A DNA stretch of 20,396 bases, from assembly GCA_016748015.1 (NCBI GenBank), contig JAAOMT010000329.1, positions 1 through 20,396 of the forward strand, read 5' to 3'. The DNA is from Geosiphon pyriformis uo1. Taxonomy: Eukaryota; Fungi; Glomeromycota. Below the pieces are notes generated by a model. The model was not told the DNA's origin. It ran no database searches and was given only the letters and a program-made list of their open reading frames with translations. Made by a program: the position numbers and the translations under genes. Every line of letters starts with the position of its first letter. Within the stretch, counting starts at the first letter, position 1. This document shows positions 755 through 20,396 of this stretch, in pieces.

Positions 755-2239
755 AAAAATAGATAGAAAAATGTTTTGTGACCATTACTTTAAAGTCTTT
801 ACTAAAAGGAGGAAAAGTGGGAATTCTCTCAAGAACTAGAAAAGAAATTTTTTAAAAATAATTTATAACTCGTAATGTTTGTCTCCATCGTTGAATGACT
901 TGAAAATTTTATTATGCCTTTTTTTTATCTACTCATTCTATTATATTTATATATTTTATTATCATGCAAATTTTAAAAATTTCCCGAAACCAAAACAAGT
1001 GATAAAATTTAAAAAATGATGGTTTGTTACTAAAAACCACGTCAGATGCTTGAAAATAAAATATAAGTTTCAATGATTTTTAAACTTTCTAATTAGTACA
1101 GTAATTTTACCAATATAAAACTGTTAAGATTCTTAATTAATCAAATTTTACTAGTTTGTGTAAAGCATCAAATGCCAAGAAATTGAAAAAACATAAAACT
1201 TGACTAATTTTATAAATATAAAAAATGTCTGATTTTATGAGTTAGTTTTAGTTAAAAAATAAAAACTTGTACAATGAAAAAAACAAAAAATTTGGACTAA
1301 TTTTGGCTTTATAAACAATTATGTAGTATACAATAAATTATATTCAAGTAAATTTGACAAATACTTTATAATTTTTTGTTTCGTAATATTAAAAAAAATG
1401 AAAATGCTTTGAATTATAAAATAATTAATAAATTTATTAAAAATTTTAAAAAAAATAAAAACAGAATTAACATAATGTTTTTAATTTTTAGTTGTTTTGT
1501 GAACAATACAGTGTGAGTTTTGTACAATAATATTCTTGAATTTATTAGGTAAAATTTTTAATATTGATATCATAGTTATTAACAATAAAAAACAGTACTA
1601 TTTATTAATGCCAAAAATTGAGATTAGTAAACTTTTAAATACTTGGAAATTATGCTTTCAACTGAAATTTATGCAGTTTTTTGTAAATAAATTAAAGCAA
1701 AAAATAATTTTGGCTATTTGTTGCTTATTGTAGACTACAAAAACACAAAATAGCTTTATATCAAGACAGATTAAAATAATACATTAATAAATAGCAAAGT
1801 AAATAGTCATTATATAATAATAATAGAAATAATAAGAAAATTTTAACAAAGAAAAAATTTAAATACATAAAATATTTGATTAAAATATAATAAATTTCAA
1901 AATTACAGTATGAAAAATCTGAAAATAGAAGAATTATTTATAATTATTTATAAAAAATAATATAGCTATTATAATTTTATGTCTTATATAATATTTTTAA
2001 AATTTAATAAAATTATTAATTCTTTTTAATAATTGATTATTTAATAATTCAATATAATTTAACAAATACAAATTATAAAAAAAGGCATTTAATTTTTTAT
2101 TTTTAAATGTTTGGATCCAAAAAAAGATAATTAATAGAAATATTAAAATGTAAATTGATTTTTTAATGTCAAATAAATATATTTTACAGATTCAAAATTA
2201 TTTCTTATATAGCTATCAAAAAAACAAATAAAATAAATA

Positions 2240-2350
2240 AATAACTAAGTCAATAATTTGGTTAATAATTAAGATCACGATAATTGAATCAATAACTAAA
2301 TTAATAATTAAGTCATTAGTTAAGTCAATAATTAAGTTAATAATTAATTT
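2240..2350 (+). repeat. Degenerate 12-bp tandem repeat (AATAATTAAGTC-like), about 8 copies
   Basis: AATAACTAAGTC AATAATTTGGTT AATAATTAAGAT ... AATAACTAAATT AATAATTAAGTC ATTAGTTAAGTC AATAATTAAGTT. Confidence 0.75.
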
Positions 2351-2839
2351 AAACATAAAATAACAAAGAAGTTTCAATCACAATAATGCTAAAAACCGGC
2401 AAAAAAATAAGATATAATATTAAAATACTTGATTAAAAACAAGTTTGATTTGCTAAAAAGATTTTTATTACTGTCATTTATTATTTAGACTTAAATTTTT
2501 AATTAAAAACAAGTTTATTAATATATTAAAATATATTTATAGTTTAAATATAATGACCAATTTTTTTTGAATAAAACAATAAAATTACAAATATATCAAA
2601 ATTTAGTAATTTAATATTAATCTTAGTAAAATTGAAAACAAATTTTATTAATAGTTAATTGGCTAAAATAAATAATCTGTTATTAAAATATGATCTTATT
2701 ATAGAATTTATTTATTATATTTAATTTTAAAAAACAATTTTTAACAGAATTATTTAATCTATCTTTAAATTTAAATAATGTATATACAGATTAATTTTAG
2801 ATAAAAAAAGTTTAGACAATATTTAAGAAATAAAAAAAA

Positions 2840-3010
2840 TTGGAATCTAAAAGTTTTATGTATTTTTGGTGTAAAATTTGCATCAAATACTTGAAAAATA
2901 TATAAATATCAAAACAGATTTTGCTTGTTTTGGTTAATATAAGTTGTCAATATGAAATTTTCATCGAATTAAACTGAAAATCTTTACAAATGGCTCTAAT
3001 TTAAAATAAT
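2840..3010 (+). pseudogene. Possible relic of a hAT-family transposase C-terminal dimerisation region
   Basis: Frame reads LESKSFMYFWCKICIKYLKNI*ISKQILLVLVNISCQ...LN*KSLQMAL. The spacing resembles the hAT consensus FW-x5-YP-x4/5-A-x3-L-x2-P-x-S/T-x2-C if TTG codons derive from CCG by C>T decay. An LDP tripeptide (TTGGATCCA, 2111-2119) lies upstream. Weak, by-eye similarity. Confidence 0.3.
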
Positions 3011-3148: not shown

Positions 3149-3894
3149 ACAAAAAAACTAAATTATTTCAGTAAATTATGACATATTTTCTTTTACAAAA
3201 AAAGTTTGATAGAAAACCCACTCCACTTTACCATACAATAGAAATTGCCAGAATTTTCAGATATTATCAGTTTCTAATTTGTTTAGAGGAAAAAAAACCT
3301 TAATACAAGCCACCTTTAGAAGCACTGCCTATAGTATTCCTTACTATAATGCCCTCCATACTTACAAACATTGACACATGAGTTCTATAATTAAGATTCA
3401 AAACAATAATGATGATAACAGGGATATGGCAGGGAGATAACAAAAAAAATTCCTCACCCAGGAAAATTTTAAGGGCTCTGAGTTTGTGCTTTACGCCCAT
3501 GCAGTTTTGTGAACTAAGCACCTTTAGCATGAGATAGATCTTGATTAGTGATTAATAATAATAATTAAAGATCCTGTAATCAGTCAAAAAAAAATGATCA
3601 AAACAACACGATATTATAAATTCTTTTTTGGTTAAGATGAGCTGCTGTTGTAAGGGCTATGTTTATAACGAATAGCGTAATAATTTAAAAAAAATTATAT
3701 AAAAACAGCTCTTCCTTCCTTTATTGCTTTCCTTTCTTTTCTTTAATGCTTCCATTCCTTCCCTTCCTTTATCGCTTCTCTTCCTTCTCTTCCTTCTCTT
3801 CCTTCTCTTCCTTTCTTTATCGCTTCCTTTTCTTTATTCTTTCCCTTCCCTTTTTTCGTCCCCCCTTTCTTCCTTTCTCTCTTCTTTTCTTTTT
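3149..3894 (-). repeat. Right arm of long inverted repeat IR1
   Basis: Reverse complement of 29-754. Carries extra copies of the CTTCTCTTC unit in its polypyrimidine tract. Confidence 0.95.
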
Positions 3895-4486
3895 CGTTCT
3901 CCCTTCCTGTCCTTATCTCTCTCTTCGTTCCTATATAAGGTGAGTTTCACTGGGTATTGTACTTGTTTAAAAGTAAAACGTTAAAAAATAAAAAAAAATA
4001 AAAATAAAAAAAAAGATTTTTTCGGAAGATAATTGTGGATCACCTCTATAATTATCTTGGACTTGTCGCGTGCACATTTTTTTTCTTGAATAATTACAAA
4101 TACAAACTTGATCATGTAACAATACTCATATATACATGTTTCTTTTTTATAGATGACTTATTTACAACAAAGTCCTTCGTTCTTCCTTCCTGTCCTTCCT
4201 TTCTCTCTCTCTCTTCGTTCCTATGTAACTTTTTTAAGGTGGGTTTTGCTGGGTATTGTACTTGTTTCAAAGTTAAAACGTTAAAAAATAAAAAATAAAA
4301 TAAAAACAATTTTTCGGAAGGAATTTGTGGCGATTCTTTAAGATAATTGTGGATTACCTCTATAATTATCTTGGACTTGTCGCGTGCACATTTTTCTTAA
4401 ATGATCGCAAATACAAACTTGATCATGTGATAATACTCATATATACATGTCTTTTTTTTATAGATGACTGATTTACGATAATGTCT
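3893..4486 (+). repeat. Direct tandem duplication of about 285/310 bp (units 3893-4175 and 4176-4486)
   Basis: Both units start TTCGTTCT(C/T)CCTTCCTGTCCTT. They share CTGGGTATTGTACTTGTTT, CCTCTATAATTATCTTGGACTTGTCGCGTGCACATTTTT and CAAATACAAACTTGATCATGT. Confidence 0.92.
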
Positions 4487-7191: not shown

Positions 7192-7684
7192 TTAGATGTA
7201 TAAGAAATCCCAAGATGCAAAAGTCTTTTAAAAATTTCAAAATGAAATAAGGAAGGATTGCTTGACATATCGGGCCAAAACAGCCAATTTTAAACATTGA
7301 GCTTGATATAACACCGTTCTCATTTTGCCGTCAATATGAAGTTAATCAAACAGAAAAAAAAACTTTTATTTTGAATAGCAAAATTAAAAAGTGATACAAA
7401 AAGAATATCATCATTTACTAACTCTAAATCAATCCTTCTATCATCTCAAAAACCTTCATTAATCTATTGGGTATTAATTAATATTCTGAGCGTTATCACA
7501 TACTTTAGCAGCTAATATTTCAAATCAAAGCTGAATTCTAAATTCAATATCAATCTTAAACTTTAACAAAGCCTGATTCACAATTTCCGAAACACACCGT
7601 AAACATACGAACATCATAAAAGCAAATTTAAATAATGATAATTCAGGAAACAGGTACGAATGAACAGAACATGAACTTCAATAT

Positions 7685-8118
7685 CTATATATGCTTTATG
7701 CGTATGCGTTTTATGTGTGTGGATGAAATGTATTTACCACTGTTATTTCCGTTGTCATTACCGTTGGATCAACCGCGATGGAAGCTACTTATATATAATA
7801 TAAGGATTTCTCTTCAGGTTGTTGTTGCCATTGCTATTAACACTGGACCAACTGCGATTGAATTTACCATTGTTGTTTCCATTCCGCGATTATTGTTCCC
7901 ATTATTATTTTCGTTATCGCTTCCAAGTTTACCATTTCCATTATCACTTCCACGTTTTTTGAGCGTAATTCTCTTAGCTGCGTGCCTGACAAAAGGATCT
8001 ATCTGCCAGTCGTTGCTGCCGTAGCTATTATCGTTAGACCAACCGCGATTGAAGTGATTGTCTTGTCAACGATGTAAGAGTCGTTATGAATGATGCTAGT
8101 TCTTAAAGAAAAACCTTT
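7685..8118 (-). pseudogene. Decayed Asn/Gly-rich repeat protein gene with dibasic KR sites (possible Kex2-processed repeat-peptide precursor)
   Basis: Minus-strand fragments in different frames: HFNRGWSNDNSYGSNDWQIDP; YAQKRGSDNGNGKLGSDNENNNGNNNRG; GNNNGKFNRSWSSVNSNGNNNLKRNP; FHRG*SNGNDNGNNSGK. Three copies of TTC(A/C)ATCGC(G/A)GTTG(G/A)TC lie at about 8053, 7862 and 7783. Frameshifts and stops are present. A TATATAA box lies upstream at about 8169-8175. Confidence 0.6.
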
Positions 8119-10137: not shown

Positions 10138-11791
10138 ATGATTATTTACTTAAATTTACTCGATCATTTAATCACCAACATTTAGACTGGTACCACTTGA
10201 TTGCCTCTTCAAGTGATTGTTTGATTGTTGGAAAAAAAGCTGTGAAACACAACATTTCACGCCTTGTAATACATTTGACCCAAGTAACTTGAATTTAATT
10301 ACCTAAAACATAATTCTAATTTCGGGCAAATTTTTTTTTGAAAGAGTCACTTGCCAAATATTTCAAGTAACTTTCCTAAATAAGACTTGAGATCCATGAT
10401 AAATTTCCCCTTCATAGAAAAACTGCTCCACGTCAAAATTTCGTGCGATATTTTGGTCTTGGACGAACTGGCCGTTTCCTCTGTATTTAATGTTTAGTTG
10501 TGTTTGAGAACAGTTTCTGTTTTGAACTTTCGTCAGTATTGGCGTAATAATTATTAGGTTTTTCAAAAATCCAAGTGATTTTAAATGTTCACAAATTCTG
10601 CGATATGAAATGTCTAACCCTCTGTATCTAATTTAGTAGGATAGAAACACAGAAAATTTTTTATGAAAATATTGACCTACTTTTCTTAATACATGTGCAG
10701 CAACAATCATTGACAACTTTTTGACATTTTATCGTGTAGTACAGTTGAAACAGGTAGGCTAGGGAGTTTACTTAATTTAGAGATAGAACATTCACCCTCA
10801 CTCCAGATTGGATTAACATTCCTTAACCAAAATAGAATCATTTCTAATGTAAACTATGCATGATGCTATAACTTAATTCCCCACTTTATATATAGTGGGA
10901 ATGAAATACATCACATGGATTGGGGGTACAAAATTAAAAAATTTCATGTGGTGACTTTTACCTAATTTTTTGTCATACACTGTATAAACCTTAACTTTTT
11001 TTGTACTATCGACTATTACTCTCAGGTTCTATATTTAAAAAAGAAAAATTATCCACAACAATTTTTCATTGAAAACATTTCCCATTTTCTGCAAAGGTTA
11101 GCATGATTAGACCCTTTTGATTTTGGCTTTTTTATCCATTAATTCATTGTCAATAAAGTACCGAGCGATATTATAGATGCTTAGCTTAGTATACAATGGT
11201 TTACATGCAACTTTCCATTCTTTTTAATATTTTAAAAATTAGAGCATATACGACATTAATGATAAAAATTTATAAATTCTCTTAATTTAAAATATTTTTC
11301 ATTCAGAGTTTTCTGTGAAATGTTTTAAATATAAATTGAGTTTTCATTATTTAGATATTTACAGTTCAAATCCTAACAAAAATCATCCCTGCTTTCTAAA
11401 ATGAATCTCAGTTATAAAATATTAGACTACTGCAATTTTTATAAATTAAAATAATCCGAGTAATTATTTTTATTAATAGTTAATTTCAAAATATAAATTA
11501 ATTTATATTTATTAACTTAATTTATTTACTTATAATCTCAAAAACTTAATTTTATATTCTTAGAAAACAAAAAATTATGATAAAAACCATTCAAATAATG
11601 AAAAAATTATAATTCTAAAATAATATATATATGTAATTAAGTTAATCAAATATATTTAATTATGTGTTAAATTATTTTTTTAAATAATAATAGATAAATA
11701 AATAATTTTTTAACAAAAGTACAATTATAAAAATAACTTTTTTAATTCATATTTGTTGGAAAAAGGTATTTTGATAAACAAATAGTACAAC

Positions 11792-11806
11792 TATTATTAT
11801 TATTAC

Positions 11807-11863
<57 letters not shown>

Positions 11864-11913
11864 CATTATTATTACTGTTACTACTACTATTACTATTACT
11901 ATTACTATTACTA
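11792..11913. repeat. Long (TAT)n/(TAC)n/(TACTAT)n microsatellite
   Basis: Directly visible. It explains the poly-Asn and poly-Ile ORFs in the track. Confidence 0.97.
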
Positions 11914-12691
11914 TTTTTATTAATAATATATTTGATAATAATTTCAAAATATTCAAAGTTCATCTTTTTTTTATAAAAACTTAAATCAACAAATCGAAAA
12001 ATAGACAAACTAAATAAAAAGAAAATTTTGTTGTAATCACGCATTATTAATTCTTCAGATTTGTATAAAATTATATTCAAATTTTGAAAAACCATATTTT
12101 TTAAAAATTGATTTTTTAAAATTTTCTAATTAATAAAAACAAATTCACTTTTCTTATAAAATAAAGTTCTAAAACTGTTTTTAAAAATTAAAATTCGAGC
12201 CATAAAAATAAATGAATCAATTTAAGTCAAAATTAATTTTTACAACTACGAGTAATTTAATCTTTGATTAATCAAATTTCTTTTATCATTTCATAGAGGA
12301 GTATAAATTTACATTTTAAAGATTTAAGAAAGTGATCGAAAATTATTTCCACCGATTCATTTTATTGGTACTGGTTCATTAAATAAACGAAAATGATAAT
12401 TTAAATGACAATTTAAAAAGCATGAAATAATTAATAGCAGTGAAACCTGTTCAACAAAAATTTCTTCTTTTAAAACGATATTCATTTATTTAGGATCATT
12501 TGACACAAGATTTTTAACTAAAGTGACCTCAAAGAAGCAGGAAAATCATCTTTATTTGGTTTCTCTACATGAATATTCTCTTTTTTTTGAACTACACTGC
12601 TAAAGGCATCCTAAATTTCATAATATAAATGAAAGAAATATAGCTTTAGAGTTAATAAATACGATCTCAACAATTGTGAATTCAAGAATTT

Positions 12692-16407: not shown

Positions 16408-18038
16408 CTACCTCAAATTTATAACAAAACAACCAAACCCAATTTCCTCATTGAACTCGCATTTTACACCCGGTAAGGAGAGTTCCAAATGTTTGCAAAT
16501 TATTGTTGGGTGTTTCAAGCTAAGGTTCCAGATTATGGATGGATCTAACTCAATCTTGAGAATTTTAGTTATTCCTGTTGAGGTTTCGTCTGGAGTGGCC
16601 ATTTCGAAAATATTGATGAGAACCTCTTTTCGAAAATTTTTAATTCCACATTTTATTGCAGTTTCAATAGCTAATATAAAACTTGCCATTGAAATTGCAA
16701 TTTGTAAATGAGCGGCTATGAGTTGAGGATATTCGATTTCAGAGGGAATTTCGAAGAAAGCTAGTTCTTCTTTCAATTCTTCGAAAGTTACACTGTTACC
16801 CACCATGATTGAAGATGGTGACCAAGTTATTTTTCCTGTGAAAAAATACTCTTTAATATAATGAAAAGCGTGGGAGTTTCGATCAAAGAAACGGTTATTC
16901 ATCAAGGAACCACATTTGGTTTTGCTAAATTCTTTCCCTAGTAAAGTTTTGGGGTATTTAGCCAGAATTGATCGAGATATTGCATGCTGTATATTGTGAA
17001 GAGAGAGAGAAATAGAGTCTAAAGTATGAAAATAATAAAGAATATATGGAAAAATTGGAAATTACCTTTTCCCCACCAACATTGAATATTATTTGCTCTT
17101 CATCCTTCAAACTGTTGGATATGACTTCAAGACCCTGAGCTTTCTTTTGAATTTCTTGAGACTGTGTTTATCATATAATAGGGGGTTTTGAAAAATTTGA
17201 AAATGATAAAAATCTTTGAAAGAATTTAATTAATTAGCCAATTTTCAGGTTACATACCAATGGTTGAAGTCTTGCCAGCCGTTTAATCAGATTTGCATCA
17301 TAATCGGGAAAGAATAGAAAGATACATACTCCGATATCCTGACTAAATTCGCATGATGAGTATTCAAAGATACTTTCGAGATGTTCTCGAATTTTGCTTT
17401 GAAATCGAGTAGCCAAGTTATATAAAATATTTGAATCAATATCTACAATAAGCGGTTCAAATTGTCCACATATGTTCTTCTCGGGTCCTTTGAATTCGTA
17501 CAGTTGAAATTGGAGTAGATCCTTATATTGAGACATTCCCCTTATTATTTCTCTCTCTAGAACTCTGAAAAATTTTCCCAGAACTGTTCCTAGCTTAATA
17601 TGAGAATTTAATTTAGGGGAATCGATAAAGGGTATTTGAAAATATAACAGTTCTCGCTGAAGTTCTTTTAGGTCTATAACTTCGTTATCACATATTGCAT
17701 TTGGTGACCATAATATTTTTCCTGTTCGATAAAATTCCATAATATAATGAAAAGCTTTGCCATTCCTTTTGAAAAAAAATTCCGGGTTTTCGGCTCCAGT
17801 TAAGGTGTCGTTTTGAACATTTAGAAAGAATGAAACAAGACGTGTATCAGGGTAGGCAGTCAAAGTAGTATAATAAGTTTCATACTAGGAAACTTTAATA
17901 ATTTGAAAATAATCCTTTCATCTCTAAAAGAAGTGGTTTGCAGCAAAAAAAAAAAACATTTACCTTGACCCCACCAATATCTAGTATAACTGTCTGCCCA
18001 CAATCTAAAAACATAGAAATTGACTTTTTATCAGCCAT
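16408..18038 (-). CDS. Tandem double BTB/POZ (T1/KCTD-type) domain protein, about 458 aa; exons 18038-17964, 17884-17258, 17161-17066, 16986-16408 (possible extra exon 16329-16305)
   Basis: MADKKSISMFLDCGQTVILDIGGVK|YETYYTTLTAYPDTRL...FFFKRNGKAFHYIMEFYRTGKILW...RLARLQPL|SQEIQ...EQIIFNVGGEK|HAISRSILAKYPKTLLG...FFDRNSHAFHYIKEYFFTGKITW. KCTD BTB motifs (LNVGG, TL..YP.T.L, FFDR...F..I.EYYRTG, EL.YFQI) occur twice. GT-AG introns of 79, 96 and 79 nt are all phase 0. The second unit has no in-frame ATG of its own before its BTB start. Confidence 0.85.
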
Positions 18039-18312
18039 TTAACATTAACAATTGGTAGAATTATTTTTCGTTTCTATCTGAAGAAGCAGCGGAGTTAAAA
18101 AAGATATCAAGTAGCTTGGCATCCGATGCATGACAAGCCATTGTAATTAACTTTTTTGGCAATGAAGAAGGTGATCAATCATCAACATTAAAAATAATCC
18201 TGTTTCTCGATTCAGATTGACTTTGCATATTTCTCTTCTCATTATCATTTCCTGGGAAAACTAAAAAGAAGAGAAATTTAACAAAAGTTATACTTTTGAG
18301 CAAGTTACGAAA
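18039..18312. promoter_or_regulatory. Putative bidirectional promoter of the two tandem-BTB genes
   Basis: Only 274 bp separate two divergent ATGs, so both promoters and 5' UTRs must fit here or overlap. No specific motif identified. Confidence 0.55.
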
Positions 18313-19959
18313 ATGGAAAATCCTAAAAATCACGATAATCCTTTAAACTTGATTAAACCAGAAGAAATAATTGTGATAAATGTTGGTGGGATTAAAGTAA
18401 ATTTTATAATTTCCTTCATCTACCTTTGATGCTATGACACGAAATTTTTATTTTCTGCTAATCATCAAAATTTCTCAAGTATGAAACTTATCCTTCAACA
18501 CTCACCGCTTATCCTGAAACACTTCTTGGTGCCATGCTTTTAAAAGGAAAGGAAAATGGTCGAAAAGAAAATCAGCTTTTTTTTAAACGAAATGGTCGTG
18601 CTTTTTATTTTATCATGGAATATTATCGTACCACAAAGTTTTTATGGTCACCAGATCGGCTTGTAGAAAATCAAACAGTATCTCAATATGAACTAGAAAG
18701 TGAACTACACTATTTTCAAATGCCTATCAACATTGAAAAGAGTGAGTACGCAAGCTCAAAGGAAAAGTTTAAAAAATCAATTGAAACGACTATAATTGAA
18801 GCAATGAAAGAATGGAATCATATTATTCAAATTGGTATTTTTATGACCGAAAAAACCACGGTGAACTATGATGGTAAAGTTATTCATCATGATATCGAGG
18901 AAACACAAATTCCTATTTTTCTATTGGCTAGCCTTTTTAAAGATGAGATTTGTGGACATATTGAAGAGATTTTCGAGGGCTGCCAATGTAAACAAACCTT
19001 TGGCGAGGGCCAAACAACGTTTTTGATATTTTTGAAATATGATACAAAAATTATGCGGAAACTTGCTAGAATGATGCCATATGTGAGTAAAAAAATTTAA
19101 TTGTTGTTAAGTCAAAATTCTGGTGTTTACTTTTTGAAAATTTCTTCAATAATACAACATGAATTGACAACAGGAGATAAATGATTCTAACTTCATTTCT
19201 CAAGGTGATTCGAGTAACGAGAAGAAACTCATAATTTTGAATGTGGGTGGTTTCAAGGTAAACGAATCAAACACGATAATCAAGATTTTCAAAACATTCT
19301 GATTATTGTTGGTTTGTTTCCTTTAGCATGAATTGTACCCTTCAACTTTCAGTCGGTTTAATAATAGCTTTCTTGGGGTAATGTTTTCTGATCGTAATAG
19401 TAAACTTTTACACCCAAGGAATGGAAATGAATTTTTCATCGATAGAAATGGCCAAGCCTTTCATTTCATTCTCGAGTATTATTTCACTGGAAGAATTACG
19501 TGGTCCCCTTCTACAATTGTTGCAGGAAGTACCATCACGAAGCAAGAGCTTGATGAAGAACTAGACTATTTTCAAATATTGAATCCAGTAATTGATCATG
19601 CTGAACATCTCACTGCACATTTAGAGCTTGGTGCTGCCTTGAAGCGTTTAGTTTCGGCTATAGAGGGTGTTATTACTTCAGGAATGGAACAATCTCGTGA
19701 TTTAATTCAAATTGATATCTTTCGTGACACTCCCCCGGAAGCAAATATTACTGGAATCCCCGAAAATTTTTATATTCCACTCGAACAAAAACTTTTATGG
19801 GACCTCACCTTCCATCATGCTGCAGCAATCCAATCTCATCTTGAGATTGTGTTTGAGGGATCTCATTGTGAATACGATTGCAGCGCTGAAACTTGCTACT
19901 TTAGGATGCTCCTTGTATATGATCATGAATTGATTACTCGTTATGCAGCACTGACTTAA
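18313..19959 (+). CDS. Tandem double BTB/POZ (T1/KCTD-type) domain protein, about 467 aa; exons 18313-18396, 18480-19082, 19174-19257, 19327-19959
   Basis: MENPKNHDNPLNLIKPEEIIVINVGGIK|YETYPSTLTAYPETLLGAML...LFFKRNGRAFYFIMEYYRT...KLARMMPY|EINDSNFISQGDSSNEKKLIILNVGGFK|HELYPSTFSRFNNSFLGVMF...EFFIDRNGQAFHFILEYYFTGRITW. Introns of 83, 91 and 69 nt (GTAAAT..AAG, GTGAGT..CAG, GTAAAC..TAG) are all phase 0. Confidence 0.88.
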
Positions 19960-20396
19960 TTTACAGTTGCCACAATTATTTAACGAAAATCAAATTAAAA
20001 GAATTGTATTTGTAGATTTTTCCTTGTAATTTTGTTTCAATATCATTTTATAACTGTGATATTACAATTAAGTTTATTAAGGATTTTTTGTTCAAAGTGC
20101 TGATGATTACGACCAAATTTTTGTTCTGAAATCAAAGATTGAAAACTTAAAAAGCCTTTTATCAGACTTTTGATTGAATAAAAAGCATTTTTCTTAAGCC
20201 CTGATGAAACAATTACCCTACTCAATTCTGACCAAAATTTACCTTAACAAAAATTAAATCTAATTTAAAATGAAGAAACCTTCATTGATCAATAATTAAG
20301 GTACTCGAAATGACCAATTCTAGGTAATATATAAAAATGTTTGGCTGCTATAAAAATGTATGTATATCTTAAAAATTTGCATTATTAAAAAAATTT

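Follow-up and report, generated by a model that had tools for sequence, protein, structure and literature searches.

Two head-to-head genes, probably for paired BTB units

Four open reading frames (ORFs) with BTB domains lie between positions 16408 and 19959 of a contig of the fungus Geosiphon pyriformis (Glomeromycota; JAAOMT010000329.1). This contig, taken as a whole and 20,396 bp long, is the window analysed here; its BTB region is AT-rich eukaryotic DNA with about 30-35% GC. The four ORFs very probably belong to two four-exon genes that stand head to head, gene A on the minus strand and gene B on the plus strand, each of which would encode two complete KCTD-like units in a single chain. 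The case for splicing between the units is evolutionary and structural. We infer that the units are joined in vivo because a conserved exon 3 cannot be translated without the upstream unit, because the inter-unit intron has an identical phase and position in two old paralogues, because the BTB domains become complete only once spliced, and because another lineage possesses an independent fusion with a continuous ORF. The first-pass annotation of the window had already read the four ORFs as two double-unit genes bridged by a phase-0 intron, and its donors, acceptors, phases, stops, motifs and coordinates were all recovered when both strands were read.

Gene A (G9A89_000154, minus strand) begins with exon 1 at 17964-18038, where the ATG and the first BTB strand of unit 1 (..VILDIGGVK) make up residues 1-25 (25 aa) ahead of the donor GTAAAT. 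Exon 2 (17258-17884) supplies the remainder of unit 1, that is the BTB_2 core and the C-terminal domain (209 aa, residues 26-234), ends in ..RLARLQPL, and is followed by the donor GTATGT placed directly after TTG, with the donor G at 17257; left unspliced, the frame meets a stop at 17236-17234. The inter-unit intron (17162-17257) is 96 nt long, runs from GTATGT to CAG in phase 0 with 24% GC, and on retention leads to a stop after 7 codons. Exon 3 (17066-17161) holds a linker and the first BTB strand of unit 2 (..EEQIIFNVGGEK; 32 aa, residues 235-266), ending in NVGGEK before the donor GTAATT, while exon 4 (16408-16986) starts with H and encodes the remainder of unit 2 (192 aa and the stop). 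The three introns measure 79, 96 and 79 nt, and the spliced protein has 458 aa.

Gene B (plus strand) has the same layout. Exon 1 (18313-18396) carries the ATG and the first BTB strand of unit 1 (..IIVINVGGIK; 28 aa, residues 1-28) and its donor is GTAAAT; exon 2 (18480-19082) encodes the remainder of unit 1 (201 aa, ending ..KLARMMPY) and gives way, directly after TAT, to the donor GTGAGT at 19083, the unspliced stop lying at 19098-19100. The inter-unit intron (19083-19173; 91 nt, GTGAGT to CAG, phase 0, 24% GC) introduces a stop after 5 codons when retained. Exon 3 (19174-19257) consists of a linker and the first BTB strand of unit 2 (..KKLIILNVGGFK; 28 aa), and exon 4 (19327-19959), again starting with H, encodes the remainder of unit 2 (210 aa and the stop). 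Here, the introns are 83, 91 and 69 nt long and the spliced protein has 467 aa.

Exons A1-A4 and B1-B4, joined in order, equal the deposited predicted proteins exactly, with nothing extra or absent in a substring check. The gene A protein is GenBank KAG9298186.1 (G9A89_000154) and the gene B protein is KAG9298187.1 and KAG9285935.1 (G9A89_000155 and G9A89_002355), all of them named 'hypothetical protein'. Positions 17860-20396 of the window are 100% identical to the first 2,537 bp of another contig (165,839 bp), an assembly overlap; gene B is deposited twice because the contig ends overlap in the assembly.

The shared four-exon plan that the first-pass annotation described is plain in the sequence, with an intron after GGxK in all four units and inter-unit introns that join phase 0 to phase 0 in both genes. 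All six introns are GT-AG introns of 69-96 nt with 24-29% GC, and exon GC is 33-38% in seven of the eight exons (27% in exon 1 of gene B). The small exons of the second units, at 35-36% GC, differ from the introns beside them (24%) and keep the family motif IIxNVGGxK. An in-frame stop precedes each inter-unit acceptor, as had been noticed at the outset: exon 3 of gene A is preceded by TAA ACA CAG and exon 3 of gene B by TGA CAA CAG, the stop standing two codons upstream in each, and neither exon has an in-frame ATG. The ATGs nearest upstream of these exons are out of frame and run into stops. In the spliced models every GT-AG intron is in phase, all stops are removed, and the start codon is in exon 1 only.

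Aligning the four large exons gives 28 columns that are invariant across the units, whose mutual identity is about 30-37%. Motifs in this alignment distinguish the first units (YETY..TLTAYP, FFKRNG) from the second (the H start, FTG.ITWSPS and AHL). The inter-unit donors occupy the same column in both genes, and this column is also the end point of the terminal units and of single-unit relatives; gene B unit 2 ends at the very column where the unit-1 exons carry their donor. Hexamers of the form GT[AG][AT]GT occur 25 times in the window, counting both strands, and the probability that both ORFs carry one in phase 0 among their final 10 codons is about 4e-5 if the two are independent. As these genes are paralogues, what counts is retention of the donor through divergence to about 35% identity, rather than the chance figure itself.

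The fusion could instead be an artefact of annotation or of our reading, the locus holding four separate genes, or a divergent promoter serving only the promoter-proximal units while the distal units have transcripts of their own. Several observations pull in this direction and away from two fused genes. Neighbouring genes are sometimes fused by gene predictors. An unspliced mRNA would stop 7 (gene A) or 5 (gene B) codons past the donor and yield a single-unit protein of a length typical of the family. All of the about 30 other BTB_2 loci in the Geosiphon genome, searched as 128 Mb in 792 contigs, are single units. Residues 195-295 of the gene B protein, the stretch around the junction, retrieved no junction-spanning fragment in a word search, a blank that proves little. 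Against an artefact stand the distal units themselves, which offer no in-frame ATG before the first-strand exon; the conservation of that exon in both paralogues despite their divergence; the donor and acceptor positions and the phase that the two genes have in common; and the independent tandem-unit proteins of the Gigasporaceae, in which a continuous ORF crosses the junction. On this balance we consider four separate genes improbable and retain two fused ones. Each gene may also have two isoforms, since an mRNA that keeps the inter-unit intron would encode a whole single-unit protein with 7 or 5 additional residues.

Domain content and predicted structure

In the profile search of the spliced proteins that the first-pass annotation had proposed, the Pfam profile BTB_2 (PF02214; length 94, gathering score 21.4 bits) finds two full-length domains in each. 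The spliced gene B and gene A proteins score 105.8 and 96.9 bits, above the gathering score, with two stretches apiece; the stretches span profile positions 1-91 and 1-86 of 94, and E = 1.6e-30 and 9e-28. Taken alone, the four large exons all match BTB_2 (19.3-37.3 bits), beginning only at about profile position 15-42. Because the matches in the spliced proteins start at position 1, the small exons supply the first BTB strand (IIxNVGGxK).

Each unit is predicted to pair an N-terminal BTB_2 domain of the T1 type with a C-terminal alpha/beta domain of about 110 aa. The AlphaFold model of one gene B unit (unit 2, with 55 homologues) has a mean predicted local distance difference test score (pLDDT) of 87.9 and a predicted template modelling score (pTM) of 0.67, and comprises a BTB domain, then a long helix, then a small alpha/beta domain. 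Its BTB domain superposes on those of KCTD16, KCTD17, KCTD5 and KCTD1 with Z of 12.2-12.7, a root mean square deviation (rmsd) of 2.3-2.7 Å and 22-32% identity; the KCTD16 BTB domain gives Z 12.7 and rmsd 2.4 Å over 94 residues, and Kv T1 domains reach Z of about 11. Whole-chain comparison with Foldseek places KCTD7 (in its Cul3 complex), KCTD1 and KCTD5 at the top, over 219-253 columns with an rmsd of 8.6-15 Å; across the whole-chain superpositions, all poor, the rmsd is 7-15 Å. The C-terminal domain may or may not be of the KCTD type; a profile search of PDB sequences returned no match for it among solved structures, only the BTB part (query positions 4-126) being matched.

At full length, the gene B model has a pLDDT of 80.6 and a pTM of 0.43, and residues 227-243, at the junction of exons 2 and 3, fall below 50. 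Unit 1 is covered by 5 of the 58 alignment rows, and its lower confidence is partly a matter of alignment depth. As modelled, the protein is a pair of independently folded units on a flexible, disordered tether of about 17 residues, with no confident intramolecular packing.

The second units could be decaying pseudo-exons of the tandem duplication, with functional products that are single units made from exons 1-2 only. Gene A unit 2 ends in ..CFVINLR (16408-16440) and lacks the last helix (YD..LI.RLA) that the other three units have, and no exon restoring it was found downstream on the minus strand between 16408 and 15800. The terminal branches of all four units are long as well, at 0.67-1.24 changes per site in the tree described below. 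Yet the distal units show no frameshift or stop across their 192 and 210 codons, retain the invariant BTB core residues, and exceed the BTB_2 threshold in the spliced proteins, while gene B unit 2 is the unit whose model reaches the mean pLDDT of 87.9 and has the shortest terminal branch of the four (0.67). Decay of the distal units is thus very unlikely, and we continue with two maintained units per chain.

Relatives with one and two units

A word search with one large exon sees only proteins of 0.55-1.75 times the query length, and its results were single-unit proteins, 222-245 aa in length, that belong to Ambispora gerdemannii and Geosiphon pyriformis. For longer proteins an exhaustive profile search with the four-exon alignment was used, in which the gene B protein (E = 1e-188) and the gene A protein (E = 2e-184) are the top two, with two matched stretches each. 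The single-unit 'BTB/POZ proteins' that are widespread in Glomeromycota, with lengths around 235 aa (about 222-250 aa) and exemplified by Ambispora leptoticha CAG8680239.1, Rhizophagus irregularis PKY52501.1 and Gigaspora margarita KAF0451431.1, belong to the same family; they have one unit per protein, whereas Geosiphon genes A and B have two by way of a phase-0 intron. From end to end, at positions 1-206 of 208, the unit profile matches these relatives, for instance over residues 26-236 of a protein of 237. Because of this end-to-end match, and because the unit ends coincide with the donor, each unit corresponds to one whole ancestral gene, and the inter-unit intron therefore occupies the former place of a stop codon, a spacer and a start codon.

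Elsewhere in the Geosiphon genome, a second adjoining unit was sought at 26 other paralogous loci with 1.5-kb flanks, and none was found. At nearly all of the about 30 BTB_2 loci the six-frame match begins at position 8-10 of the profile (at position 3 in two loci), so the intron after GGxK is a family trait. Some of the single-unit loci are divergent too: 262050-262259 (-) and 265302-265478 (+) on contig C633 are 3 kb apart, 1587244 (-) and 1596323 (+) on C787 are 9 kb apart, and several more loci lie clustered on C700 and C727. Glomeromycota genomes typically show large gene-family expansions, those of BTB families among them (PMC9453076).

Two units in one chain also occur in the Gigasporaceae, where Dentiscutata erythropus CAG8539493.1, Racocetra fulgida CAG8584631.1 and Gigaspora margarita KAF0460398.1 are members of the same family with two BTB-plus-tail units per protein. 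In the Dentiscutata erythropus gene an uninterrupted ORF crosses from one unit to the next, where Geosiphon has an intron. The Gigasporaceae tandem units cluster with Gigasporaceae single-unit proteins in a quick tree (98%), and in a more careful tree they fall apart from the four Geosiphon units. Judged by these trees, the two-unit architecture arose at least twice, in Geosiphon and in the Gigasporaceae. In the deposited Dentiscutata model CAG8539493.1 (CAJVPY010001861.1, L034:5001-6577), a late acceptor seems to have been chosen for unit 2, so that 11 residues are skipped; these residues, YETFQSTLTAQ, lie behind an earlier TCATAG acceptor and agree with the family consensus.

Order of the duplications

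The careful maximum-likelihood tree comprises 48 units. In it, the four Geosiphon units form a clade (99/96) that has no members outside Geosiphon and no Ambispora protein inside, and within this clade the two first units pair with each other (99/84), as do the two second units (98/93). This pairing, together with the shared intron positions and phases, favours the order that the first-pass annotation had put forward, namely an internal duplication and fusion that would have preceded the inverted duplication of the fused gene. The preference is borderline: forcing gene A unit 1 to group with unit 2 costs 15.9 log-likelihood units, with p = 0.048 in the approximately unbiased (AU) test, and so speaks less than firmly for this order.

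Under the favoured order, a two-exon single-unit gene would first have been duplicated in tandem. The two copies would then have fused when the sequence from the stop codon of the first to the start codon of the second, spacer included, turned into a phase-0 intron, now 96 nt in gene A and 91 nt in gene B. Finally, the fused gene would have been duplicated in inverted orientation, after which all four units would have diverged to their present identity of about 30-37%.

The divergent pair and its possible function

The start codons of the two genes face away from each other at 18038 (-) and 18313 (+), within the <1 kb criterion for a divergent pair, and the 274-bp spacer between them (18039-18312) is a candidate shared promoter region. 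Among the data examined, the divergent pair is known from Geosiphon only. The first-pass annotation had proposed a search for conserved divergent pairing in relatives; this was not seen at the tandem gene of Dentiscutata, the only relative's locus inspected, which has no divergent partner and is flanked by an OPT transporter gene on one side and, on the other, by one with a faint Pfam match to HAUS-augmin3.

In KCTD proteins, the BTB domains self-assemble into tetramers or pentamers, the C-terminal domains bind partners, and many members recruit Cullin-3. By analogy, the BTB domains of the Geosiphon proteins would drive self-assembly, and their C-terminal domains would bind partners; the KCTD precedent, oligomerisation combined with partner-binding tails, is described in PMC5664961 and PMC13361646. 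Tethering diverged units in one chain would double the valency of such an oligomer or fix a 1:1 ratio of two unit types within it, and the double-unit proteins may be Cullin-3 substrate adaptors. The Geosiphon genome has at least four cullin genes, which shows only that partners are available. A further step would have genes A and B co-expressed and their four diverged BTB units assembled in fixed order in one closed hetero-oligomer, for example a T1-like ring of one A and one B chain; we regard this as highly doubtful. If true, such a hetero-oligomer would carry four distinct partner-binding tails and serve as a Cullin-3 adaptor or scaffold, a design undescribed for KCTD-type proteins. A comparison with paired NLR-like sensors was also considered and rejected, since no feature of the locus supports it.

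Comparison with other multi-BTB proteins

The animal proteins KCTD1, 5, 7, 16 and 17, a group of Cullin-3 adaptors and other BTB proteins that oligomerise, share the T1-type BTB fold with the Geosiphon units, and in both groups an N-terminal BTB domain is followed by a C-terminal domain of similar size. However, the animal proteins have one unit per chain, and the Geosiphon tail has no detectable sequence relation to KCTD tails. Several BTB domains in one polypeptide, as in genes A and B, are found in KCTD19, whose chain is described as containing three BTB domains of the T1 type (PMC13361646), and in RhoBTB, whose two tandem BTB domains possibly form an intramolecular dimer (PMC1257465). In these proteins it is BTB domains that are repeated and not whole BTB-plus-tail units, and RhoBTB, unlike genes A and B, has long-form BTB domains together with a GTPase domain.

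The exhaustive profile search returned many further multi-BTB_2 proteins, with up to eight domains in one, and KCTD19-like proteins of Asterias and Branchiostoma gave weak multi-stretch matches at profile positions 1-55, which is the BTB part (E about 1e-16 to 1e-18). Orthology to KCTD19 was rejected, as the Geosiphon units cluster within the single-unit family of Glomeromycota and the animal matches cover the BTB part only. What differs from KCTD19 and RhoBTB is the repetition of whole BTB-plus-tail units, and at least four Glomeromycota species already show this in their public protein sets; a literature search found no paper describing such an architecture. The first-pass annotation had known of no description of the arrangement, an impression of novelty that gives way before the exact proteins in GenBank, the tandem-unit homologues in Dentiscutata, Racocetra and Gigaspora, and the published KCTD19 and RhoBTB.

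Significance of the locus and remainder of the window

The locus is a fairly ordinary product of gene-family expansion, and an unusual mechanism is not indicated. Its practical value is small, in that four ORFs are to be read as two genes, as public annotation already has them. In essence, it would be a clean example of tandem copies fused by a spacer turned intron, the same architecture having been reached in the Gigasporaceae by simple read-through. A covalently paired KCTD-like protein would also offer a convenient entry point to fungal BTB oligomers and their links to Cullin-3 ligases.

Outside the BTB region, positions 1001-3000 and 11001-12000 of the window are very AT-rich (15-17% GC). 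One feature within them is a 12-nt repeat spanning 2240-2347; another is a (TATTAT)n array, from 11792 to 11922, whose minus-strand reading is a poly-Asn ORF (11742-12095). CT-rich repeats occupy 3709-4298 and 7635-8024, with 48-nt and 9-nt periods at 3709-3834, and the Leu/Ser/Pro/Phe-rich ORFs at these two places look like repeat sequence and not like genes.

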